DNA of 28,673 bases, taken from NCBI RefSeq assembly GCF_006345805.1, contig NW_021833315.1, positions 1 to 28,673 on the forward strand, given 5' to 3'. Under the pieces are notes generated by a model. The model was not told the origin of the DNA, ran no database searches, and was given only the letters and a program-made list of their open reading frames with translations. Shown in pieces: positions 4,359 through 28,673 of this stretch; position 1 is the first letter of the stretch; each line of letters starts with the position of its first letter. The position numbers were made by a program, and so were the translations under genes. The DNA comes from Octopus sinensis. Its lineage: Eukaryota.

Positions 4359-7300
4359 CTCAGGGTTGGCACCCTCAACGTTGGCACACTGAAAGGCAGA
4401 TCTGGCGAGATCGTTGAATTGCTTGAACGGAGGTGTGTTGATATATGCTGCATTCAAGAAGTGAGGTGGAGAGGAGGTTCTGCTAGGTTCCTCACAGGCA
4501 AAGGACAGAGGTACAAGATTTTCTGGGCTGGGAATACTGACGGGGTCGGGGGTGTGTGGCATGCTTATCGCCGAAAAATGGGTAGATAGGGTAATCGAGG
4601 TAGTCAGAGTATGTGACAGAATAATTAAGATTAGTAGTGCTCCATCATAGTTTAGCAACTATTATATCGGCCTATGCCCCTCAGCCAGGGCTACCTGATG
4701 GACAGAAAGACTGTTTCTATGACACCCTACTGCAGACACATCATTGACGAACGACAGGACCTTCTCTTTGTAGCTGGTGACTTCAATGGGCATGTTGGAC
4801 GATGTGCTGGGGGATTCCATGGCGTGCATGGAGGCTACGGTTATGGTTCCCGCAACGAGGAGGGAACCAGGCTGCTGGAGTTCTGCGATGCGAATAGTCT
4901 TATGGTTTGCAACACTAACTTCAGGAAACCGACAAGCCACCTGGTCACCTAGCGATCGGGCCGGCATACTAGCCAAATCGACTACATCCTTGCCAGAAAA
5001 AGGGAAAGGTGGCTGCTTATAAATGCCAAAACCTTCCCAGGCGAAGAATGCACCCCACAACATAGACTGGTAGTTAGTGACTTTAGGATCAGGACTAAGA
5101 GGGTGACTAGAAGACGACCAACATGGAGAAGAAGGGTCTGGAAGCTTAAAGACCCTGCGAATGGACAGAGATTTAGAGACATGTTACTTGAAGCCTTTGA
5201 CGAAATGGAAGGGGGTATAGCTACGCATGGGGTAGAAGACAACTGGACGCTTCTGAGGGACAACCTGCTGAAAGCCACTGACCAGATCTGTGGCTGGTGC
5301 AAAGTCCCCTTAAGACCCAAAATAACGTGGTGGTGGAACATATTGTTGACAGGGCTATTAGACAAAAGAAACAGGCTTGGAAGGCCTGGAAGAACGGTGG
5401 TAGCAGGGAAGTGTATCAGACTGCCAGAAGGGAAGCTAGGAGACAGGTCTATCTAGCCAGAGGGGAGGCAGATAAGGAAAAATTTGCCAATGTCCTGCGC
5501 CGTGAGGATGAAAGACTTGAGGTATTTCGTGTTGCAAGACAGTGTGTGAGAGAGAATCGTGACGTGGTAGGAGAGAAATGTGTTCGCAAGGATGACGGTT
5601 CACTTGCGCTAAATGAGGATGCAAAGAGAGAGGCTTGGAGACGCCACTATGAAAGGTTGCTGAATGAGGAAAATGAATAGGATAAAGAGAGTCTGCCGAA
5701 TGTCGACCCAACAGAGGGACCAGCAATCCGAGTTAACAGTTCCTTAGTAGATAAGGCAATTAGAAGCATGAAAACAGGGAAAGCCCCAGGCCCATCAGGA
5801 ATTACTGCAGAGATGCTCAAAATATCTGGTAGTGTCGGCTATAGCTTAGTCACCCGTATAGTTAACCAGGTGATACACGAAGGAGTCATACCCAATGACT
5901 GGTGTAGCAGCATAATAGTCAACTGCTACAAAGGTAAAGGCGACGCCCTAGATACAAATAACTACAGGGGCATCAAGCTGCTGGATCAGGTAATGAAGGT
6001 TACGGAGAGGGTTATAGCCCAATTAATTAGAGAGAGAGTTAGCTTAGATGATATGCAGTTTGGGTTCGTGCCAGGGAAAAGTACTACTGATGCTATATTC
6101 CTGGTAAGACAGCTGCAGGAGAAATACCTAGCCAAAGATAAGCCCTTGTACCTGGCTTTTGTTGACTTGGAGAAAGCCTTTGACAGGGTCCCCCGATCCC
6201 TTATCTGGTGGTCAATGAGGAAACTAGGGATAGATGAATGGTTAGTGAGAGCTGTGCAAGCCATGTACAGAGACGCAGCTAGTAAGGTGAGGGTTGGCAA
6301 CGAGTACAGTGAAGAATTCCGGGTAGAGGTTGGGGTCCACCAAGGTTCAGTCCTCAGTCCCCTCCTATTTATCATAGTCCTCCAGGCAATAACGGAGGAA
6401 TTCAAGACAGGATGCCCCTGGGAGCTCCTCTATGCTGATGACCTTGCTCTAATTGCTGAGTCACTATCAGAACTGGAGGAGAAGTTTCAGGTGTGGAAAC
6501 AAGGATTAGAATCGAAGGGCCTTAGAATCAACCTAGCCAAAACCAAAGTCCTAATAAGTAGGAAGGTGGACCAATCACAAACGACTTCAGGTAGATGGCC
6601 CTGCTCGATCTGTAAAAAAGGTGTAGGTAGAAATTCTATAAGGTGCACCAAGTGTAAGCTATGGACACATAAGAGGTGCAGCAATGTCAAAGGAAGGCTA
6701 ACTAGGAAAATAGTTTGTGGCAGATGCTCAGGAGCAATAAACACTGGAAATGTGCAGAGACCAACTTCTACCACGTTCCAGGTAGACAAACTAGAAGTAG
6801 TTGATAGCTTCCGCTACCTAGGAGACAAAGTCAGTAGCGGGGGTGGGTGTGCTGAAAGTGTAACTGCGAGAGTAAGAATAGCCTGGGCAAAGTTTAGAGA
6901 GCTCTTACCCCTGCTGGTGACAAAAGGCCTCTCGCTCAGAGTAAAAGGCAGACTGTATGATGCATGTGTACATACAGCCATGCTACATGGTAGTGAAACA
7001 TGGGCCGTGACTGCTGCGGATATGCGGAAGCTCACAAGAAATGAAGCCAGTATGCTCCGATGGATGTGTAATGTCAGTGTTCATAATCGTCAGAGTGTAA
7101 GTACCTTGAGAGAAAAGTTGAACCTAAGAAGCGTCAGTTGTGGTGTGCAAGAGAGACGGCTGCGCTGGTATGGTCATGTGACAAGAATGGCTGAAGATAG
7201 TTGTGTGCAAAAGTGCTACACCCTAGCAGTTGAGGGAACCTGTGGAAGAGGTAGACCCGGGAAAACCTGGGTCGAGGTGGTGAAGCACGACCTTCGAACT

Positions 7301-7378
7301 TTAGGTCTCACCAAGGAAATGACTAGAGACCGAGACCTATGGAAGTATGCTGTGCGTGAGAAGACCCGGCAAGACTAG
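4359..7378 (+). pseudogene. RTE EN-RT ORF with lesions; 3' part (5681-7378) is open
   Basis: Frameshifts around 4560-4700 and ~5340; in-frame TAG at 4950-4952 and 5678-5680; ORF 5768..7378 is uninterrupted. Confidence 0.9.
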
Positions 7379-9480: not shown

Positions 9481-9550
9481 GCAGTTGAGTTAGCAAGAAA
9501 GTACCTGAGAAAGGTGTGTCAATGAAGCCTCATTCACTTCCTTGAAACTG

Positions 9551-9556
9551 TATAAA
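9551..9556 (+). promoter_or_regulatory. Candidate TATA box of TNF-like copy A
   Basis: TATAAA about 40 nt before the ATG at 9590; conserved in the paralogue at 23020-23025. Confidence 0.5.
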
Positions 9557-9865
9557 GCCGACTTAAATTAAATCTCAAAATACATTACAATGATGCCTTG
9601 TGGAGGTACTGAAGCAGCTGATCAAGGGACTGATCAAAAAAGAAAACATTAGAACTATACTAAAATGCCATTAACAAAAAAGGAAGTACTAATAGTATTA
9701 TGTGTACTAATAGTATTATGTATAGTGATCATGTTGCAGCAGTAACTCAGGTAAATTCTTTTTATTTACTTTCGACAAAGGTGCCGAGTAGGCAGAACGG
9801 TCAGAACTCCACCAACGACTTTTGTTTCCTCATAACTTGCAGTCAAATGGATTTGTTTTACTCTC

Positions 9866-10202
9866 TTTTTTTTTACTCTTTTTTTACTCTTTTACTTGTT
9901 TCAGTCATTTGACTGCGGCCATGCTGAAGCACCACCTTTTTTAGTCGAGCAAATCGACCCCGGGACTTATTCTTTGTAAGTCCAGGACTTATTCTATCAG
10001 TCTCTAAGTGACAGGAGACGTAAACACACCAGCATTGGTTGACAAGCAATGCTAGGGGGACAGACACACACACACATATATATATATACATATATACGAC
10101 AGGCTTCTCTCAGTTTCCATCTACCAAATCTACTCACAAGGCATTGGTCAGCCTGGGGCTATAGCAGAAGACACTTTCCCAAGATGCCATGCAGTGGGAC
10201 TG
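9866..10202 (-). mobile_element. tRNA-derived SINE (octopus-type, family 2), 5' head missing
   Basis: Matches the complete copies at 13597-13959 and 19123-19518; (TTTTACTC)n tail at left. Confidence 0.85.
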
Positions 10203-11100
10203 TTTTTTCCCATTAAGTACTGATAGTCTTTTATTTATTTTCATTTATATATTTGTTTCAGTCATTTAGTATATTACTAAAAGAAAACTAGTCAACAAGC
10301 ACACACACACATACAGTCATATAACACAATTTCTCTTTTACCTGCTTTTGAAATTTCAACTTCTATTCTGTAGTTATATGTAATGTGTACAAGTCCACCA
10401 AAAGTTTATTCCCATTAAGTACTGATAGTCTTTTATTTATTTTCATTTATATATTTGTTTCAGTCATTTAATATATTACTAAAAGAAAACTAGTCAACAA
10501 GCACACACACACATACAGTCATATAACACAATTTCTCTTTTACCTGCTTTTGAAATTTCAACTTCTATTCTGTAGTTATATGTAATGTGTACAAGTCCAC
10601 CAAAAGTTTATTCCCATTAAGTACTGATAGTCTTTTATTTATTTTCATTTATATTGTTTCAGTCATTTAATAAATTACTAAAAGAAAACTAGTCAACAAG
10701 CACACACACACATACAGTCATATAACACAATTTCTCTTTTACCTGCTTTTGAAATTTCAACTTCTATTCTGTAGATATATGTAATGTGTACAAGTCCACC
10801 ACAGTTTTTTTCCCATTAAATACTGATAGTCTTTTTATTATTTTCATTTATATATTTGTTTCAGTCATTTAGTATATTACTAAAAGAAAACTAGTCAACA
10901 AGCACACACACATACAGTAATATGTCACAAACTTCTATTCTGTACATATATGTAATGTGTACGAGTCCTCCAAAGTTTTTTCCCATTAAGTACCAAAAGT
11001 CTGTATTTATTTTCATTTATATATTTGTTTCAGTCATTTAGTATATTACTAAAAGAAAACTAGTCAGCAAGCACACACACATACTGTCATTGTCACAATT
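10203..11100. repeat. ~200-bp tandem repeat, about 4.5 units
   Basis: CCCATTAAGTACTGATAGTC-type marker at ~10209, 10411, 10613, 10812 and 10982. Confidence 0.93.
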
Positions 11101-11519
11101 TGATGTCGATGTCACTTATTTTGGTTTGAAATAAAGCGCTTGATCACTTAATAATCCTAACTTAATCCTGAGCAATGCTGGGCTATACTGATATTATATA
11201 TATATTATATATATTATATATATATATATATATAAAAAACACAGGGAAGATAATCACCTCCACAGCAAATATAACCAGTGTCTTATAGATATCAGAATTA
11301 CACAAAACCATACTAGAATAGTTATAATGTGTCAGGTGGTCTATATTTAATCCCCACTAAGATTATTTTATAAAAGGTGGACACAAAGAAAAAATCCCTT
11401 CTCTGTAATTTTTACAGTCATTGGAGGTTCTTAAATTTTAAAAGATCCCGTTTTTCAAGGGAACATAAACAAACATCTTATATAGTTTTTTGTCTTAGGA
11501 TCTTTCTTCTGATGTTACT

Positions 11520-11750
11520 ACTAAGACCAAGTATTCTATTGAATCAGTAGATAAAAAATTTAATCCAGATACAACAAACATCTTTCAGCCTTCAGACACC
11601 ACAAGAAGAGACATGCAACAACCTTCTCCACATTAATCTGGAAGCTAAAGGATGACAACATCAGCTACAACATTAAATGTATTGGTACAAATATCAAGTC
11701 TGATCCAAGATTATAACAAGACAGTGTCAGTCTTGATACAATCATTAAAA
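11520..11750 (+). mobile_element. Degenerate Penelope (Naiad-type) GIY-YIG remnant
   Basis: One frame reads RYNKHLSAFRHHKKRHATTFSTLIWKLKDDNISYNIK, aligning with RWYAHTHSFRRPDKSNQTTLAAHIWYLKRNSIPFKIT of the element at 1534-1938. Confidence 0.65.
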
Positions 11751-12200
11751 AGGACAGCAATGTGATGTAATTAATACAAACAACAGCTAACACCATCTTA
11801 TCTTAATTTTCTTTTTCTCTCTACTCTAGACACAAAGTAAAGTACCAGATCAGACAACAGATCAGACAACAGATCAGACACCAGATTCTAAATGTAAGTA
11901 CATATTTTGCCATTATTTTGCTTTTTGCATGTTCATAATATCATGACACTGTAACATATTGTAACGTCAATGAAATCACTGAACATCTCCTTAATACACT
12001 ACAGTCTTAAAATAGATAGCAATACCTTCAACATGAAAAAAAACAGACATACTACTAAAGAAATAAATGGCAAAAATACACCATCATTAAATATATGAAA
12101 GAGATGCTGCACAATATTTGACTGGACAATGGCTTTAGATGACCATGTTAAGGCTCACGAAACTACTGTGCGATGTGTGAAATATATGGATGCTTATATA

Positions 12201-12863
12201 TTTCTATACTACCCACAAGGGGCTAAACATACAGGAGACAAAGAAGGACAGATAACAGATTAAGCCAATTACATCGACCCCAATGCAAAACTGGTACTTA
12301 ATTTATCGACCCCAAAAGGATGAAAGGCAAGTCGACCTCAGTGGAATTTGAACTCAGAACGTAACGACAGACGAAATAAACACAAAGCATTTCGCCCGGC
12401 GTGCTAATATTTCTTATTTCTTTACGGCCCACAAGGGGCTAAACATAGAGGGAACAAACAAGGACAGACAAAGGTATTAGTAAGTCGATTACTCGACCCC
12501 AGTGCGAAATTGGTACTTTATTTATCGCCCCGAATGGATGAAAGGCAAAGTCGACCTCGGCAGAATTTGAACTCAGAACGTAACGACAGACGAAATACCA
12601 CAAAGCATTTCGCCCGGCGTGCTAATGTTTCTTATTTCTTTACTGCCACAAGGGGCTAAACATAGAGGGAACACAAAAGACAGACAAAGTATTAATTTGA
12701 TTACATCGACCCCAGTGCGAAATTGGTACTTTATTTATGGACCCCGAAAGGATGAAAGGCAAAGTCGACCTCAGCAGAATTTGAACTCAGAACGTAACGA
12801 CAGACGAAATACCACAAATCATTTCGCCTGGTGTGCTAACGTTTCTGCCACCTCGCCGCCTTA
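12201..12863 (-). mobile_element. Head-to-tail trimer of the Deu/Nin-like SINE (~215-bp units)
   Basis: Three units with a complete head only on the rightmost; direct repeat ATGGATGCTTA at 12186-12196 and 12864-12874 flanks the whole array. Confidence 0.88.
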
Positions 12864-13007
12864 ATGGATGCTTAGTCTTGGCACTCTTTCATTAATGGTT
12901 AATACTTGTTCTCCATATAGATCATTTTCATTATGGTTAATGATGATTGTAAAACAGTTAATATGTTGTATAATTGTTTATTAGATGCTAATCTGAAGTA
13001 TTCAATA

Positions 13008-13314
13008 TCTTTATATATAAAACTGTAGTTGTGTGTGTGTCTGTCTACTCCGATTTAGATTCCTAACTACTCCCACATTTTGCAGTGCAGTTTAAAACCA
13101 AAAGCGGGTATCTTATAGTTGTGATTCATATCGAGCTCTTCTAGGTATTAGTGCGCGTCTACAATGAGTCTACGATTTAAAAAAAAAATTTACCATCATT
13201 TTTTCCCCGTTTTTAGTCCATTTTTCACTCGGTTTTATATAAGGGAAAAAAACTCTAAAATGCTTATATAGTTACTTCCCTACAAACCCAAGCACCGCGG
13301 GGCGATAATGCTAG
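13008..13314 (+). mobile_element. Non-autonomous Helitron
   Basis: A|TC start (ATCTTTATATATAAAA), GC-rich subterminal segment, CTAG|T end; inverted homologue at 18714-19111. Confidence 0.75.
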
Positions 13315-13596
13315 TATGAAATACATCAGGAGGTACTCTTCCTTGAATAGTCTTCTGTTGATATTGAACCTATATTAAAATATATCCTTCTCACTGTCTG
13401 CTTTCTCTCCTTCTTAATTTTCAGTTCACCATTTTCAGTTCTTTTACCTAAACCAAGGGTTCAAAGAGTTGGGTAAGTTTATTTTATACAGATTTATTGC
13501 ACATTTTTTCTCATAATTTGCATTATGCCCATTAAATAACTGAAATTACAGATTTAAGGGTACTTTGCAAGCAAACAAGCATGCAAGCCTCCAACA

Positions 13597-13959
13597 TGCG
13601 GCCATGCTGGAGCACCGCCTTTAGTCGAGGAAATTGACCCCCAGGAGTTATTCTTTGTAAGCCTAGTACTTATTCTATCAGTCTCTTTTGCTGAACCGCT
13701 AAGTTACGGGGACGTAAACACACAAGCATTGGTTGTCAAGCGATGTTGGGGGGACAAACACAGACACAAACATACATGCCACATATATAATATACATATA
13801 TACGACGGGCTTCTTTCAGTTTCCATCTACCAAATCCACTCACAAGGCTTTGGTCGGCCCAAGGCTATAGTAGAAGACACTTGCCCAAGGTGCCACACAG
13901 TGGACTGAACCCGAACTATGTGGTTGGTAAGCGAGCTATTTTACCACACAGCCACTCCT
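13597..13959 (-). mobile_element. tRNA-derived SINE (family 2), nearly complete
   Basis: Minus-strand head AGTGGCTGTGTGGTAA...GGGTTCAGTCC with A/B-box-like motifs; matches 19123-19518. Confidence 0.88.
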
Positions 13960-14383
13960 GCGCCTATATTGCTGTGTGAAAAAAATTAAAATGTATTTAT
14001 TGTTGTTGTTATTATTAATTTCCATTCAGAGGAAATTACTTATTTGCAGTGGATGAAAGATGAGAACCAGCAAGAAGGCGACATAGAATTGATCAATGGA
14101 CCTATATTACTATACCACAAGATGGAGTTTATGACATAAATGTGTAGTGCAACTTTATATTCCAGAAAATACACCTGACTTTCATTTATTCCTAACTTTG
14201 TACACAAGAATGAACAAAGATTGAATCTAAGAAAAAGACTTTACATTCCTCACATATAACAAAACATGAGCCAATAGAATTATCAGTTACACACAAATTG
14301 AAAGCTAATGACAGAATCTTTCTGAAGAGGAACAGGGTAAAATTCATCAGTCCTGACAAGCACAGAAGCCACCTGTCTATCAC

Positions 14384-14543
14384 CGTTTTGAACTAAAATC
14401 TTCCACCAAACCTTAGTCCCAATTTATGTTCCTAACACTAGTTTAATGATAATTAAGTTATTTTACTAAATTCTTTGTTATATTTAAAATAATTGAAAGA
14501 AATATGGAGCATCTCAAACTAAATACAGTAACGAAAGGGTTAA
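14384..14543 (-). mobile_element. Possible piggyBac-like MITE end; left boundary uncertain
   Basis: Minus strand begins TTAA|CCCTTTCGTTAC at 14543, the TTAA/CCC signature; no partner TIR found. Confidence 0.4.
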
Positions 14544-16030: not shown

Positions 16031-16121
16031 ACTCTTACTCTTTTACTTGTTTCAGTCATTTGACTGTGGCCATGCTGGAGCACCACCTTTTTAGTCGAGG
16101 AAATCGACCCCAGGACTTATT
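16031..16121 (-). mobile_element. 3' fragment of family 2 SINE, fused to the mariner
   Basis: TTGTTTCAGTCATTTGACTGTGGCCATGCTGGAGCACC matches the SINE 3' ends at ~9897 and (reverse) ~19500. Confidence 0.8.
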
Positions 16122-16913
16122 CATCACTACTCCGTCCTGGTCCCAGAAGACTGTGAGCATGACCTTGCCAGCGGAGGGCTGTACCCTTGCCTTCTTTGGA
16201 GGGGGTGAGTCACGGTGCTTCCACTGCATTGACTGGGCTTTGGCCTCTGGATCATCGTGATGGACCCAGGTTTCATCCTGTGTAATCAGTCTTTTGAAAA
16301 ATTTTGACTCATCTTCTTGGCACATCTCCAAATTCACCCTCGAGCACTCGACGCGTTCTTGCTTCTGGAAAGGCGTGAGCAACCTGGAAATCTATCTGGC
16401 AGACACCTTTTGCATATGCAAATGGTCATGAATGATAGCTTCCACAGACCCGGTACTAATCTTGACCTCATGGGCTATTTGGCGAATAATTATGCGTTGA
16501 TCTTCCAAAATGGCAGCCTCAACTTGACGGACAGATGCCTCATCAATGGCAGAAGGGGCGACCAGATCTGGGAGCTGTTTCCACAGAGTTCTGACCATGT
16601 TTGAATTCACGATGCCAGCGTTTTACAAGGTCATATGATGGGGCATCATCACCATAAGTTACTTTCATTTCATCAAAAGTCTCACGTGGTGTGCGTCCTT
16701 TCAAATACAAAAACCGGATCACTGCTCGACACTCAACAGGCTCCATTTCACACTTGACTCGGTTCAAACACCTGTAAATCAGAAACCACAATTAATTCAG
16801 AGCTGTAATTTGCCACTTACTCTATAGAGATATAAATAATTGCACATGCAAAATTTCAGCTAGATCAAACAACTGCAAGTGGGTCAGAGGCATTACTTAT
16901 TGAACGTCCCTCG
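16122..16913 (-). mobile_element. Mariner transposon, 5' half, pseudogenised
   Basis: TA|CGAGGGACGTTCAATAAG TIR at 16915-16895; ATG at 16746; MEPVECRAVIRFL..GRP, KVSARW, LITQDETWVHH..KVMLTVFWD across three frames; the second and third catalytic Asp and the other TIR are absent. Confidence 0.9.
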
Positions 16914-19564: not shown

Positions 19565-19704
19565 ATACACATACTTATACACGTGTTTCACATGTTACTT
19601 AAATTCACCGACTTGGTCTCTGTTCATGCAATTCTTACGTCCATGAGTCTTTTCCTGAGATTTCTCTGTTCCTCAGTCATATCATTATTGTTGTTAGGAT
19701 GTTG

Positions 19705-20663
19705 AGCTGGCAGAATCATTAGCATGCCGTGTGAAATGCTTGGCAGTATTTCGTATGCCGTTACGTTCTGAGATCAAATTCCGTCGAGGTCGACTTAGTC
19801 TTTCATCCTTTCGGGGTCGATAAATTAAGTACCAGTTACGTACTGGGATCAATGTAATCAACTTAATCCCTTTGTCTGTCCTTGTTTGTCCCCTCTATGT
19901 TTAGCCCCTTGTGGGCAATAAAGAAATAGGTATTTCGTCTGCCGTTACGTTCTGAGTTCAAATTCCGCCGAGGTCGACTTTGCCTTTCATCCTTTCGGAG
20001 TCGATAAATTAAGTACCTGTTACGCACTGGGGGCGATGTAATCGACTTAATCCCTTTGTCTGTTCTTGTTTGTCCCCTCTGTGTTTAGCCCCTTGTGGGC
20101 AATAAAGAAATAGGTATTTCGTCTGTTGTTACGTTCTGAGTTCAAATTCCGCCGAGGTCGACTTTGCCTTTCATCCTTTCGGAGTCGATAAATTAAGTAC
20201 CTGTTACGCACTGGGATCAATGTAATCAACTTAATCCCTTTGTCTGTCCTTGTTTGTCCCCTCTATGTTTAGCCCCTGTGGGCAATAAAGAAATAGGTAT
20301 TTCGTCTGTTGTTACATTCTGAGTTCAAATTCTGCCGAGGTCGACTTTGCCTTTCATCCTTTCGGAGTCGATAAATTAAGTACCTGTTACGCACTGGGAT
20401 CAATGTAATCAACTTAATCCCTTTGTCTGTCCTTGTTTGTCCCCTCTATGTTTAGCCCCTTGTGGGCAATAAAGAAATAGGTATTTCGTCTGTTGTTACA
20501 TTCTGAGTTCAAATTCCGCCGAGGTCGACTTTGCCTTTCATCCTTTCGGGGTCGATAAAATAAGTACCTGTTATGCACTGGGGGCGATGTAATCGACTTA
20601 ATCCGTTTGTCTGTCCTTGTTTGTCCCCTCTATGTTTAGCCCCTTGTGGGCAATAAAGAAATA
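19705..20663 (+). mobile_element. Pentameric array of the Deu/Nin-like SINE (~183-bp headless units after one head)
   Basis: GTATTTCGT marker at ~19746, 19930, 20113, 20297 and 20481. Confidence 0.9.
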
Positions 20664-20862
20664 AGAAACGTTAGCAGGCCAGGCGAAATGCTTAGCAATA
20701 TTTCATCCATCTTTACATTCTGAGTTCAAATTCCGCTCAAGTCTACTTTGCCTTACATTCTTCTGGGGTTGATAAATGAAATACAAGTGAATGATCAGGG
20801 TCAATGTCATAAACTGGTTCCCTCCCTACAAATTTCAGACCTTGTGCCTTTGGTAGAAAGCA
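20664..20862 (+). mobile_element. Diverged SINE copy abutting the array
   Basis: AAACGTTAGCAGGCCAGGCGAAATGC head; AAATTTCAGACCTTGTGCC..AGAAAG tail like 8830-9019. Confidence 0.7.
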
Positions 20863-22046: not shown

Positions 22047-22268
22047 TCAGTAGTTTTATTTTTATAGCGTGCTTTCACTTCACTACCGAGCACAGCTCTG
22101 TGTGCCTTGGGTATGTGCTGTGATTTGTTGTGATGCTCTGATGGTTATTGTATGGAAAGTGTTCTGCGTAGGATGTGTGCAGTGCCTACTAGTGCAATTT
22201 TCTGTATGTTATATGTGTTTGTAAGTCCTGGTGTTTTTGTTATGTATTTGTCTGAATATTTTTTTTGT
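22047..22268 (-). mobile_element. 3' end of an R4/Dong-like (RLE-clade) non-LTR retrotransposon
   Basis: Minus strand YSDKYITKTPGLTNTYNIQKIALVGTAHILRRTLSIQ* (stop at 22147-22145), ~100-nt 3' UTR, (AAT)n tail; clade assignment from the recalled QKxALxGTAxILR C-terminus. Confidence 0.7.
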
Positions 22269-23017
22269 TGTTGTTATTAGTATTATTATTATCATTGTTA
22301 TTATTATTATTGTTGTTGTTGTTGTTGTTGTTGTTGTTATTATTATTATTGTTATTATTATTATAATTGTTATTATTATTTATCATTATAATTGTTGTTG
22401 TTGTTATTATTATTATTAGGGCAGCAAGCTGGCAGAATCGTTAGCCCGGCAGGCAAGATGCTTTGGGGTATTTTGTCTGCTACGTTCTGAGTTCCACTGA
22501 GCTTGACTTTGCCTTTCGTCCTTTCGGGCTCAATAAAATGAGTACCAGTGAAACACTGTGAAACCTCTCCCCACCAAATTCCAGGTCTTGCGCCTATAGT
22601 AGAAAGGGTATTGATACTGTTTCTATTGCCAATTGCAAAAAAAAAAAAAATTATAAAAAAACTGGATATAAGTAAATTAAGTAAATGTGATTGGAGGAGA
22701 GATAGAAAAGAATAGAAAAGAAAGAGAGAGAAGGACAAAGAGCGAGAGGAGATAGAGAGGGGAGAAAGAAAGAGAGGAGTGACAGGAAGAGATAGAAGCG
22801 AAAGATTAAGAGAGGAAAGAGAAGATAGAGAGGGGGAGAGAGGAGATAGAAAGGGAGAGAGAAAGAGAGGAGTGACGAGAAGAGATAGAAAGTGAAAGAC
22901 AAGAGGGGAGAGAGAAGATAGAGACGGGGAGAGAGCGCAGTTGAGTTAGTAAGAAAGTACTAGAAAGAGAGGAGTGACAGGAGGTGTGTCAATGAAGTCT
23001 CATTCATGTCATTGCAC

Positions 23018-23025
23018 TATATAAA
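23018..23025 (+). promoter_or_regulatory. Candidate TATA box of TNF-like copy B
   Basis: TATATAAA about 60 nt before the ATG at 23082; conserved with copy A. Confidence 0.5.
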
Positions 23026-23081
23026 GCTGACTAAACTTAATCTCGCTTCATTCGACAAGCTATTGTGAATGATACATTACA

Positions 23082-23251
23082 ATGATGCCTTGTGGAGGTA
23101 CTGGAGGAGCTGATCAAGAGGCTGATGAAAAAAGAAAAGATCGGAAAAAGTCATTAACATCGAAGATAAAGAAAACAAATTATCTATCATCGGTGTACTA
23201 ATAGCAATATTATGTGCAGTGATCATTACTATTGTTGTAGCAGTAACTCAG
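23082..23251 (+). CDS. Exon 1 of a second TNF-like/type II membrane paralogue (one frameshift in an A-run)
   Basis: MMPCGGTGGADQEADEKRKDRKKSLTSKIK(K)/NKLSIIGVLIAILCAVIITIVVAVTQ|GTACAT; adding one A in the run at 23172-23175 opens the frame to a phase-0 donor equivalent to copy A. Confidence 0.62.
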
Positions 23252-23558
23252 GTACATTTTTTTATTTACTTTCGACAAAGGTGCCAAGTAGGCAGAACGG
23301 TCAGCACGCCGGACAAAATGTCTAACAACATTTTGTCCATCCTTATTTTCTGAGTCCAAATGCTTCTGAGGTTGCCTTTACATTCCATCTTTCCGGGGTT
23401 GATAAAACCAGTACCAGTGAAGCGCTGAGTTGATTTAATCGACTATTTCCCTCACCAAAAAATTTCAGGCCTTGTACCAATAATAGAAAAAGGATTATGC
23501 ATTCTTACATATGATAACTCCACCAACTACTTTGTTTCCTCATAACTGGCAGATAAAT

Positions 23559-24287
<729 letters not shown>

Positions 24288-24289
24288 AT

Positions 24290-25582
24290 AATATTATTAG
24301 AGACAAAACCACTATTTTGCAAAACAAACAAGGAAAGACTTAATCAATACATAAAATTTTAATAAATAGTCAAAAAAACCGCCACTACAATCGTTTCTTG
24401 TCTTGATCGACAATCTTCAGGTGGACTTCCAATCTAAAATATCAATATTTTAAAATATAAAAATAATAATTTTAAATAATTAAAGTATGAATGAAAAATA
24501 TAAATATATAATCCATATATAACCTATATATAATCCATATATAATCAATATATAAACAATATATAAACTAAAAAAAACCTATCAACAATTAAATATAAAA
24601 TATAAAATATAAAATATAAAACAAAACAAAAAAATAATAATAATATAATAATAAACTATATATACACCCATCACATATACCTATTATATATAACCATATC
24701 TAACTACATACACTAAATCACACACCTATATATATATCCCTATACATACACATAAAAACGTCTAGGCAACTATAAAACACAATACTTATTCATACTCCCA
24801 CACACACACATACAACCCCCATTCACGCTCTAGAAAACGGACATCACTCAAAACTATGAACGGAGAAATGGAATAAATGGAATTAAAAATTATATTCACT
24901 TGGTAAACGAACACTACTTAAAAATTATGAATGAAACAATGCAATAAAACAACAGACATCGCAAATAGACACAAATTACTACGAATTCCTTAACAAACCT
25001 ACCATGATAAACCAAAACTCATAAAACATATAATGATAAAATCTCCCTTTACTAAACTCTATAACAACCTATATAGCAATCCCCTAACTTAAACATTCAC
25101 ACACAAATACAGACACGTAAACCACACACCCACGACATATACAAATACCCAACCACTTACACATACCAATACATACATATAAACCTCAACATATACTCCA
25201 AAAAACCCACTCACCCCACACAGACAAATAAACACAAAATTATGAATGGATTCTTTTATAAACTACCATGATAAGCTAAAACTCACAAAACAGAAATGAT
25301 AAAACCTCCTTTACTAAACACTATAACATACTTATATAGCAATCCCTTTAACCTATACATTCACACACAATACACACACTAAACCACACACCCATAACAA
25401 ATACAAACACCCACCCCACTCACACACACCCACAAGTACATATAAGCCTCAACATATACACCAAACAAAATTACTTTACCAAGGAACTTAACATATGTAT
25501 AAAAAGTATAACCGCTCTGGAAACGAACATCTTTAAATTAATTAATGGAGAAATGGAATAAATGGAATTAAAAATAATATTC
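24290..25582 (-). mobile_element. Putative Penelope-like terminal region (pseudo-LTR) with diverged subrepeats
   Basis: The minus strand is TG-rich like the 3' region of the element at 586-2926, carries the hammerhead, and ends in (TA)n; no ORF seen. Confidence 0.5.
24382..24424 (-). ncRNA. Minimal type I hammerhead ribozyme, Penelope-type
   Basis: Minus strand CCAC-CUGAAGA-UUGUC(GAUCAA)GACAA-GAAAC-GAUU-GUA|GUGG: both conserved cores, 4-bp stem I, 5-bp stem II, short near-palindromic stem III, GUA cleavage triplet. Confidence 0.78.
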
Positions 25583-28500
25583 ACGTGGCAAAACGAACAC
25601 CACTCAAAAATTATGAATGAAACAATGTAATAAAACAACCAACATCGAAAATAGACAAATTACCACAAATTCCCTAAAAAAACCATGATAAACCAAAACT
25701 CTTAAAAACATATAACGATAAAATCTCCCTTTGCTAAACTCTATAATAAACCTATATAGCAATCCCCCTAACCAAAACATTCACACACAAATACCACACA
25801 CGTAAACCACAGACCCACGACTTATACACATACCTATACTAACTTATAACCCTCAATATACACCAATACCCACCCCTCCCCCACACAGACAAATTAACAC
25901 ATACATCCCAAAACCTAAATAACAAACCCATATACACATTCACACACAAACACACACACACGCAAAACACACACACACAACAGATACATATACTCCCTCA
26001 CATATACGCATATACATACTCACTAAACTCGATATATACAACAATATTTACACACCCACACTCACAGATAAATAAATCATACAACTAAAAACTCACACAC
26101 AATCTCATATACATAACACTCCTATGAAAACAACATTAAATACATCGTAATTAACCAGAATATCAAAAATAACAATATGACATAAGGATAAATAAAATAC
26201 ATACTTACAAGTCAGTTTCAAATTATGAAGTGAAATTAAATTCTTAGCCGTTAAAAAAATCAAACCAAAATTACGTTACCATAGAAATAACTTATGTAAA
26301 AAAAAAAAAAAAAAAGAATACGCGCCATGGAAAGTAAACGTCATTTAAATTATGAATGGAGAAATAGAATAAATAGAACTAAAAACTATATCCACGTGGC
26401 AAACCAACACTACTTAAAAAATTTATTATGAATGGATTCTTTAAAAAACTACCATGAAAAATCATTATATACAATTATGAGCTTTAGCTCACCTAAGCAG
26501 CTTATACAAACAACTTGCAGTAACCCAAACCTATTCTCGATGCCTATCTCACTACTACACTATTCCATTCACAATTCCAAGCAACGCTAGTCCACCACCG
26601 GTTATTCACGTGGCAAAACGAACACCACTCAAAAATTATGAATGAAACAATGCAATAAAACAACCACATCGAAAGTAGACAAATTACCACGAATTCCCTA
26701 AAAAAACCATGATAAACCAAAACTCTTAAAAACATATAACGATAAAATCTCCCTTTGCTAAACTCTATAACAAACCTATATAGCAATCCCCCTAACCTAA
26801 ACATTCACACACAAATACACACACGTAAACCACAGACCCACGATTATACACATACCTATACTAACTTATAAACCTCATATACACCAAAACCCACTCCCTC
26901 CCCACACAGACATATTAACACATACATCCCAAAACCTAAATAACAAACCCATATACACATCACACACAACCACACACACACGCAAAACACACAAACACAA
27001 CAAATACATATACTCCCTCACATATACGCATATACATACTCACTAAACTCGATATATACAACAATTTACACACACCCCACTCATACAGATAAATAAATTA
27101 TACAACTAAAAACTCACACACAATCTCATATACATAAACACTCCTATGAAAACAACATTAAATACATCGTAATTAACCAGAATATCAAAAATAACAATAT
27201 GACATAAGGATAAATAAAATACATACTTACAAGTCATTTCAAATTATGAAGTGAAATTAAATTCTTAGCCGTTAAAAAAATCAAACCAAAATTACGTTAC
27301 CATAGAAATAACTTATGTAAAAAAAAAAAAAAAAAGAATACGCGCCATGGAAAGTAAACGTCATTTAAATTATGATGAGAAATAGAATAAATAGAACTAA
27401 AAACTATATCCACGTGGCAAACCAACACTACTTAAAAAAAATTTATTATGAATGGATTCTTTAAAAAACTACCATGAAAAATCATTATATACAATTATGA
27501 GCTTTAGCTCACCTAAGCAGCTCTACAACAACTTGCAGTAACCCAAACCTATTCTCGATGCCTATCTCCACTACTACACTATTCCATTCACAATTCCAAG
27601 CAACGCTAGTCCACCACCCGGTATTCACGTGGCAAAACGAACACCACTCAAAAATTATGAATGAAACAATGCAATAAAAAACAAATCGAAAGTAGACAAA
27701 TTACCACGAATTCCTAAAAAACCATGATAAACCAAAACTCTTAAAAACATATAACGATAAAATCTCCCTTTGCTAAACTCTATAACAAACCTATATAGCA
27801 ATCCCCCTAACCTAAACATTCACACACAAATACACACACGTAAACCACAGACCCACGATTATACACATACCTATACTAACTTATAAACCTCAATATACAC
27901 CAAAACCCACTCCCTCCCCACACAGACATATTAACACATACATCCAAACCTAAATAACAAACCCATATACACATTCACACACCCACACACACACACGCAA
28001 AACACACAAACACAACAAATACATATACTCCCTCACATATACGCATATACATACTCACTAAACTCGATATATACAACAATTTTACACACCCACACTCATA
28101 CAGATAAATAAATATACAACTAAAAACTCACACACAATCTCATATACATAAACACTCCTATGAAAACAATAAATACATCGTAATATAACCAGAATATCAA
28201 AAATAACATATGACATAAGGATAAATAAAAACATACTTACAAGTCAGTTTCAAATTATGAAGTGAAATTAAATTCTTAGCCGTTAAAAAAATCAAACCAA
28301 AATTACGTTACCATAGAAATAACTTATGTAAAAAAAAAAAAAAAAAAGAATACGCGCCATGGAAAGTAAACGTCATTTAAATTATGAATGGAGAAATAGA
28401 ATAAATAGAACTAAAAACTATATCCACGTGGCAAACCAACACTACTTAAAAAAATTTATTATGAATGGATTCTTTAAAAAACTACCATGAAAAATCATTA

Positions 28501-28673
28501 TATACAATTATGAGCTTTAGCTCACCTAAGCAGCTCTAACAAACAACTTGCAGTAACCCAAACCTATTCTCGATGCCTATCTCACTACTACACTATTCCA
28601 TTCACAATTCCAAGCAACGCTAGTCCACCACCCGGTTATTCACGTGGCAAAACGAACACCACTCAAAAAAATT
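25583..28673. repeat. ~1.02-kb tandem repeat, three units plus, running off the window
   Basis: CACGTGGCAAAACGAACACCACTCAAAAA at ~25583, 26607, 27626 and 28641; poly-A + GAATACGCGCCATGG at ~26316, 27336 and 28348. Confidence 0.95.

Follow-up and report, generated by a model that had tools for sequence, protein, structure and literature searches.

A probable disabled copy in a tandem array of Octopus TNF-superfamily-like ligand genes

The window analysed here is the whole stretch of 28,673 nucleotides taken from the Octopus sinensis contig NW_021833315.1 (positions 1 to 28,673, forward strand), octopus genomic DNA rich in tandem repeats and in sequences resembling short interspersed nuclear elements (SINEs). 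Between 9551 and 14396 it carries, on the plus strand, a gene of four exons which reads as a member of a tandem array; the genes of this array are specific to Octopus, evolve fast and encode ligands resembling those of the TNF superfamily. Most likely we are dealing with a young pseudogene or else with a crippled duplicate; assembly error probably accounts for about half of the damage that this copy seems to carry.

The four-exon gene and its tandem array

An earlier note on this DNA, made from the letters alone, had proposed at this place a pseudogenised TNF-ligand-like gene of four exons, missed by the list of open reading frames (ORFs). We read the window directly and translated it to check each coordinate, and the four exons, their junctions (9750/11830, 11893/13425 and 13472/14030), the phases (0, 1 and 1) and all the stops were found at the positions given there. 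The comparisons below draw on three further loci: the O. sinensis contig VCDQ01008637.1 of assembly GCA_006345805.1 (L001), a stretch of O. vulgaris chromosome (OX597837.1, 29865452-29914185, at ~29.87-29.91 Mb; L002), and the locus (L003) holding the intact O. sinensis gene LOC115227685, whose product XP_029654294.1 (P0008) has 209 amino acids; the O. vulgaris counterpart of LOC115227685 (P0009) has 221. The features of the gene and its surroundings are as follows.

9552 to 9559, plus strand: TATA-like box (TATAAAGC; TATAAAG at 9552), ~30 bp 5' of the first ATG, from direct reading
9590 to 9750, plus strand: exon 1, encoding a cytoplasmic tail and a transmembrane (TM) anchor, disabled; alignable with the first exons of P0008 and P0009, both intact paralogues
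9650 to 9652, plus strand: in-frame TAG in the tail-coding part, from direct reading; common to L001
9686 to 9721, plus strand: perfect 18-bp tandem duplication in the TM-coding stretch, in frame (period 18, 2.0 copies, 100% matches)
9700 to 9750, plus strand: alternative start at ATG 9700 (MCTNSIMYSDHVAAVTQ), without TM anchor; the RefSeq model of the locus begins at its L001 equivalent
9732 to 9733, plus strand: site of a 7-nucleotide (nt) deletion, from alignment A5 against copy B and the P0009 gene; common to L001
11830 to 11893, plus strand: exon 2, stalk, with a 12-bp repeat in 3.4 copies (DQTT DQTT DQTP); present in XP_029655647.1
13409 to 14212, no strand: burst of window-derived differences, ~16 against the other assembly, of which 15 are 1-nt insertions or deletions (indels) and 1 is a substitution
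13425 to 13472, plus strand: exon 3, start of the TNF homology domain (THD; FHHFQFFYLN...), from translation and comparison with other copies
14030 to 14396, plus strand: exon 4, bulk of the THD, with stop TAA at 14394-14396, from translation, Pfam, protein search and alignments
22203 to 23561, plus strand: second copy of exon 1 with its upstream region and the beginning of intron 1, the next unit of the array (74-89% identical)

All three introns between 9590 and 14396 are kept as GT/AG introns, with pyrimidine tracts upstream of the acceptors and donors of the GTAAGT or GTAAAT type; exon 1 ends at a CAG/GT donor (9750/9751), and exon 2 lies between a polypyrimidine-AG acceptor and an AAAT/GTAAGT donor. 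Intron 1 contains a 202-bp unit in ~3.6 copies (10202-11098), intron 2 a 214-bp unit in three copies (12199-12846) which recurs, inverted and as a longer array, downstream of the gene (19704-20788), and intron 3 a SINE; a tRNA scan of the window detected no tRNA-like part in the intron repeats. Alignment shows the TATA-like box to be kept also at ~23019, in the second copy, and in the paralogue loci L002 and L003; the box at 9552 is a putative promoter element.

Positions 1-24310 of the window align to VCDQ01008637.1 at 99.24% identity over 24.3 kb, as against only 94-97% for the copies in the fetched O. vulgaris chromosome stretch. The RefSeq model of LOC115229433 on this contig, XP_029655647.1 (P0010), is an "uncharacterized protein" of 146 amino acids which reads MCTNSIMYSDHVAAVTQ / TQSKVPDQTTDQTTDQTPDSK / FHHFQFFYLN...KEL / EEITYLQW..., that is, the window's ORF from ATG 9700 followed by exons 2, 3 and 4 over the identical three junctions. 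The window gene hence corresponds to LOC115229433, and what the earlier note had described as a missed gene was already annotated, albeit as a truncated, unnamed and uncharacterized protein with no mention of TNF. Exons 1 and 2 are 100% identical between the window and L001, and the junctions and exon 1 lesions are likewise shared. L001 is free of the seven 1-nt deletions of the window described below and has private lesions of its own near the 3' end, namely 1 nt deleted at the equivalent of 14293 and 3 nt at 14369; because of these its model stops at 146 amino acids, whereas the window runs through both sites to the family-typical C-terminus ...LKANDRIFLKRNRVKFISPDKHRSHLSITVLN. The intact gene for XP_029654294.1 in L003 also has four exons in phases 0/1/1, with an intron 1 of 6.1 kb; every peptide segment tested was present exactly in the genomic translation and GT/AG was checked at each junction. 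The agreement of the same-locus protein and of this intact gene shows the four-exon structure to be real.

A second unit of the array starts 13.5 kb downstream and comprises the GA-rich upstream repeat, the TATA-like box, exon 1 (23082-23250) and the first 100 bp of intron 1. Its exon 1 resembles the intact paralogues more closely than that of the first copy does, and has a 1-nt frameshift at ~23168, in a stretch without differences from L001. Searching all pieces with tblastn revealed no second copy of exons 2-4 in the rest of the window, only this second exon 1. The second promoter and exon 1 show that the locus is a tandem array, and the O. vulgaris stretch holds a more complex one, with multiple gene copies. 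Since the introns and the TATA-like box are kept, a second exon 1 lies nearby and O. vulgaris has a tandem array, the window copy is of the duplicated, non-processed type of pseudogene.

Further observations concern the O. vulgaris stretch. Five tandem 2.27-kb units lie at L002 12798-17471 and 31172-34041, each of which contains just the TM half of exon 1 together with the beginning of intron 1. The middle gene copy is broken, its exon 4 (22691-23096) showing +4 and +1 nt; an annotated 28.7-kb O. vulgaris gene model bypasses it, linking an exon 1 at 10001 to exons at 36155-38715.

Lesions in exon 1 and in exons 3 and 4

In exon 1, the first ATG (9590), the TAG at 9650 and the hydrophobic stretch (9665-9742) share one frame, and the homologous reading at the donor (...AAVTQ) lies in a different one. 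The TAG, counted earlier among the disabling mutations, is indeed present, but is not necessarily disabling by itself: an in-frame ATG follows at 9665, so that the stop might be tolerated. Of the exon 1 lesions, the one that matters is the frameshift before the donor. The deletion at 9732/9733, of 7 nt in the alignment to copy B and the P0009 gene and of 4 nt relative to the P0008 gene (both lengths shift the frame), sits right before the conserved ...GTAGCAGTAACTCAG/GT end of exon 1; the TM anchor is thereby no longer in frame with the donor or with exons 2-4, and for this reason the RefSeq model falls back on ATG 9700 and a product without anchor. The window is 100% identical to L001 over 9560-9760, and the two assemblies show zero differences over 9500-10500. 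The exon 1 damage (TAG 9650 and the 7-nt deletion), the same in both, is probably real.

Exons 3 and 4 present a different picture. Comparison with four other copies (L001, both L002 copies and the L003 gene) identified seven single-base deletions in these exons in the window alone, each removing an A from the coding strand. Exon 3 has three of them, which jointly preserve the frame and change ...LNTKGYKEL into ...LNQGFKEL. The four in exon 4 lie at ~14099, 14137, 14207 and 14212, and the last three add up to -3; the homologous reading runs in frame 14000 (KCVVQLYIPENTPDFHLFLTLYT), then briefly in frame 14002 (KNE), then back in frame 14001. TAG 14145, TAA 14193 and TGA 14211 are all present in frame 14001, and, given the 1-nt deletions, they read as out-of-frame by-products and not as nonsense mutations. 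The earlier proposal of TAG 14145 as a disabling mutation thus falls away, and the suggestion that the stops at 14193 and 14211 reflect a compensated frameshift agrees with the sum of -3. The V..NF element of the domain motif proposed at the same time was read in the wrong frame, where the relatives have ...DIKCVVQLYIPENTPDFHLFLTLYTKNE...

With an O. vulgaris copy as outgroup, every one of the ~16 differences between the two assemblies over 13409-14212 is derived in the window, and intron 3 is affected together with the exons. Over the 24.3 kb of alignment to L001, gap openings (86) outnumber mismatches (44), the reverse of the ratio expected from real divergence, and the differences are clumped, with none across 4500-7000. 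Because the exon 3-4 deletions are private to the window and lie in a burst of indels, among differences that are clumped and inverted in their gap-to-mismatch ratio, they are probably consensus or assembly errors as opposed to decay, and 13409-14212 looks like an unpolished long-read consensus. The region is multi-copy, with paralogous units 94-97% identical and a SINE in intron 3, and in such regions the polishing of a long-read consensus with short reads is prone to failure. The public O. sinensis assembly was built from PacBio reads and the O. vulgaris assembly from Nanopore reads (PMC10700109). Strictly homopolymer errors were considered as the cause of the A deletions and dropped, two of the three in exon 3 lying outside runs; we prefer a locally poor consensus for that reason.

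On these grounds we consider it probable that 9590-14396 is a duplicated pseudogene of the non-processed type, or a crippled copy, and that its damage in exons 3-4 of the window is largely technical. Pseudogenisation as first proposed therefore probably holds for exon 1, which is broken in two assemblies so that the canonical protein cannot be encoded, and probably fails for exons 3 and 4. The 7-nt deletion would uncouple the membrane anchor from the stalk and the THD, with an in-frame TAG also upstream, and the window copy would at best yield an anchor-less THD protein from ATG 9700.

The strongest competing explanation, which we nevertheless regard as unlikely, is that of a fully decayed pseudogene: the frameshifts of exons 3-4 would then be real mutations, as would the lesions of exon 1. 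That exon 1 is broken in two assemblies speaks for it, as do the exon 4 lesions that other copies carry on their own account (the 1-nt and 3-nt deletions of L001, the +4 and +1 nt of the O. vulgaris copyM), since such copy-specific lesions would fit independent decay after loss of function. However, all seven deletions are private to the window and belong to an 800-bp burst of 15 indels to 1 substitution which spans intron 3 as well, while true divergence yields substitutions far in excess of indels and the 4500-7000 segment shows no assembly differences at all.

A functional gene, with all lesions being assembly errors or with expression from ATG 9700 as an anchor-less THD protein having its own role, appears improbable. 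It would account for the RefSeq coding model from ATG 9700, for the intact splice sites and TATA-like box, and for the fact that, private changes aside, exons 2-4 hold no lesion common to both assemblies. Yet both assemblies carry identical exon 1 lesions, within a stretch without differences; a tail followed by a hydrophobic anchor opens all nine sequences of the family alignment A2, a TM helix is present in the P0008 model, and without a signal anchor a THD cannot reach the cell surface. In addition, the window copy replaces four residues invariant in the nine-sequence family alignment (A69, K74, D129 and M183 in P0008 numbering) which its closest intact paralogues keep, suggesting relaxed constraint in this copy. 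Finally, the window's subfamily has no transcript-derived (Logan) protein among 5.8 billion proteins, in contrast to the subfamily of the O. bimaculoides protein XP_014776179.1 (LOC106873363; P0007), which has one.

A still more speculative possibility, to which we give very little credence, is that the locus is alive and that the anchor-less THD protein from ATG 9700 acts as a dominant-negative or decoy subunit in mixed trimers with membrane-bound paralogues. If true, this would be a "decapitated" TNF ligand put to regulatory use in a fast-evolving cephalopod immune gene cluster. Returning to the crippled duplicate as the probable state of the locus, the case invites caution in calling pseudogenes in long-read cephalopod assemblies, for more than half of the apparent disabling lesions were private to one assembly and clustered with 1-nt indels.

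Relatives and the ligand domain

The pieces of the window were searched separately, and the profile and fold were built from intact paralogues. The longest open piece (14214-14393, 60 amino acids), searched among 1.84 billion proteins, matches O. sinensis XP_036354635.1 (E=1.3e-20, 86% identity) as well as more distant Octopus paralogues. Chance ORF fragments are ruled out by the former match. A search with XP_036354635.1 gave three relatives, XP_029655647.1 among them, and the family profile retrieved 14 proteins, all from Octopus (13 with Octopus species names and one Logan contig); the clade thus appears confined to Octopus as far as these searches reach. Intact members are ~210-260 amino acids long; a short tail at the N-terminus is followed by one TM helix, a stalk of low complexity and, at the C-terminus, the THD.

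Pfam TNF (PF00229) was the only family match of the 14214-14393 piece, aligned to positions 74-122 of the 127-position profile, its C-terminal part, and its 12.6 bits (E=0.14) fell short of the cut-off of 23. For the short pieces (14029-14100, 14064-14144, 14135-14221, the TM piece and the spliced exon 3/4 start) Pfam produced no useful match, as they are too short. Among the paralogues, XP_014776179.1, a "THD domain-containing protein" in UniRef, exceeds the curated cut-off (26.7 versus 23 bits, over profile positions 1-124 of 127), two others score below it (P0005, 19.9 bits; P0004, 14.1 bits), and P0001, the closest intact paralogue scanned, has no Pfam TNF match. UniRef names two of the paralogues "THD domain-containing" and "TNF family profile domain-containing". 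The membership of the window copy is transitive, following from its clear homology to the threshold-passing XP_014776179.1.

The best PDB sequence match of the nine-member family profile was lymphotoxin-alpha (7dov, E=0.001), with an alignment covering the ...L.W...G.L.LV...I.IP.DGIY...V.L.I region. The fold was examined on the intact paralogue P0008 in place of the broken window product. Its AlphaFold model features a TM helix at residues 30-52, a disordered stalk and an all-beta THD with a predicted local distance difference test score (pLDDT) of 78-95. The 50 best Foldseek matches listed for this model in the PDB are all TNF superfamily (TNFSF) ligands (TL1A, RANKL, TNF-alpha, TRAIL, FasL and CD40L), with E-values of ~2e-9 to 3.5e-8, a probability of 1.00 and target-normalised TM-scores of 0.65-0.81. 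The predicted domain of P0008 thus agrees with the ten-strand beta jelly-roll THD expected of the family and, among the matches listed, resembles solved TNFSF ligands. The assignment to TNF is supported by the paralogues and the predicted structure, not by the broken product itself.

In the same way the paralogues lend support to the initial description of the locus as a divergent mollusc TNF-family ligand gene with a type II layout and most of the domain in the last exon. The type II topology is present in the paralogues and cannot be encoded by the window copy, whose TM stretch is out of frame with exons 2-4, and this is why we call the copy a pseudogene of the TNF family instead of a functional member. 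Judging from fold and architecture, intact members would be membrane-anchored type II ligands whose THD trimerises and which may engage cysteine-rich receptors of the TNF-receptor type.

In the choice between TNF and C1q, raised at the outset, Pfam and the structure prediction support TNF: that the domain is a C1q-type globular head, an idea to which the jelly-roll fold common to C1q and TNF and the weak Pfam TNF matches of most members could lend colour, is scarcely credible, since C1q (PF00386) has no match at E<=1 in any piece or paralogue scanned and is absent from the 50 best Foldseek matches listed for P0008, the profile finds lymphotoxin-alpha, and the type II TM architecture comes without a collagen-like Gly-X-Y stalk in the family sequences inspected.

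Exon 4 gives a ratio of non-synonymous to synonymous rates (dN/dS) of ~1 for all pairs, the intact P0008/P0009 pair included, with small counts that do not discriminate between copies. The P0008 and P0009 exons (L003 18669-19051 versus L002 38333-38715) differ by 10 non-synonymous and 0 synonymous changes, and this 10:0 difference between genes both named LOC115227685 may reflect positive selection or mis-paired paralogues. A dN/dS of ~1 would fit a fast-evolving family of the immune type, though the counts are small.

Several points weigh against our interpretation of the locus as a disabled TNF-family copy. As intact copies also show a dN/dS of ~1, this ratio does not set the window copy apart as a pseudogene. 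The two assemblies may not be independent; were they built on common raw data, a single error could account for the exon 1 lesions in both. The deletions across the window are strand-biased (19 A versus 5 T single-base deletions on the coding strand), which departs from the expectation under symmetric sequencing error. The RefSeq pipeline built a model at the locus, so some expression or coding potential may exist. As for the family, neither P0001 nor, by similarity, P0008, the intact paralogues nearest to the window copy, has a Pfam TNF match of its own, and the proposed TNF membership rests on the link via P0007, the profile match and a structure predicted from nine sequences.

Remainder of the window and comparison with known systems

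The rest of the window is occupied by repeats and mobile elements. An intact reverse-transcriptase ORF of 536 amino acids belonging to an element of the long interspersed nuclear element (LINE) type lies at 5768-7378 on the plus strand, with ORFs from 4209 (RVT_1, E=8e-33); the absence of assembly differences across 4500-7000 suggests that it may be a young insertion. Mos1/mariner transposase fragments (HTH_48 and part of the DDE domain, interrupted) are found at 16059-16791 on the minus strand. Two ORFs on the plus strand in a GC-richer block, 507-1319 (270 amino acids) and 1534-1938 (134 amino acids), have no Pfam match at E<=0.001 and probably belong to another mobile element. The end of the window (25000-28673), outside the O. 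sinensis contig alignment, is rich in AT, shows a strongly negative GC skew and contains repeats spaced by ~1 kb, with translated segments that resemble one another at 26284, 27305 and 28316.

The closest intact paralogues of the window copy are LOC115227685, LOC118761074 (XP_036354635.1, 210 amino acids) and P0009, with exon 4 DNA ~94% identical to that of the window. They share with it the four exons, the phases 0/1/1 and the tail-TM-stalk-THD layout, and differ from it in their open frames, a shorter stalk without the DQTT repeat and a C-terminus six residues longer. O. bimaculoides XP_014776179.1 is homologous along the entire THD (43% identity to P0008, profile E=1.8e-108) and represents a separate subfamily with a longer cytoplasmic tail, recognised by Pfam, unlike the subfamily of the window.

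Six TNFSF paralogues of O. vulgaris have been reported to form a monophyletic, lineage-specific cluster (preprint, bioRxiv 10.1101/2024.07.27.603686). To this expansion the present work adds members and at least one disabled copy, and LOC115229433, LOC115227685 and LOC118761074, all "uncharacterized" in RefSeq/UniRef and without a Pfam domain, can now be assigned to the TNF ligand superfamily. The window copy is an ordinary disabled member of a known, lineage-specifically expanded family, with no new mechanism or fold.

Vertebrate TNFSF ligands and invertebrate ligands of the Eiger type have, like the octopus family, a type II membrane topology and a C-terminal jelly-roll THD. Sequence identity between the vertebrate ligands and the octopus family is only 12-20%, and most octopus members fall below the Pfam threshold; the octopus motif around ...L.W....G.L....I.IP.DGIY.....V.L aligns with lymphotoxin-alpha. 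Vertebrate TNF and LTA also have four exons and, like the octopus gene, encode the greater part of the THD in the final one.

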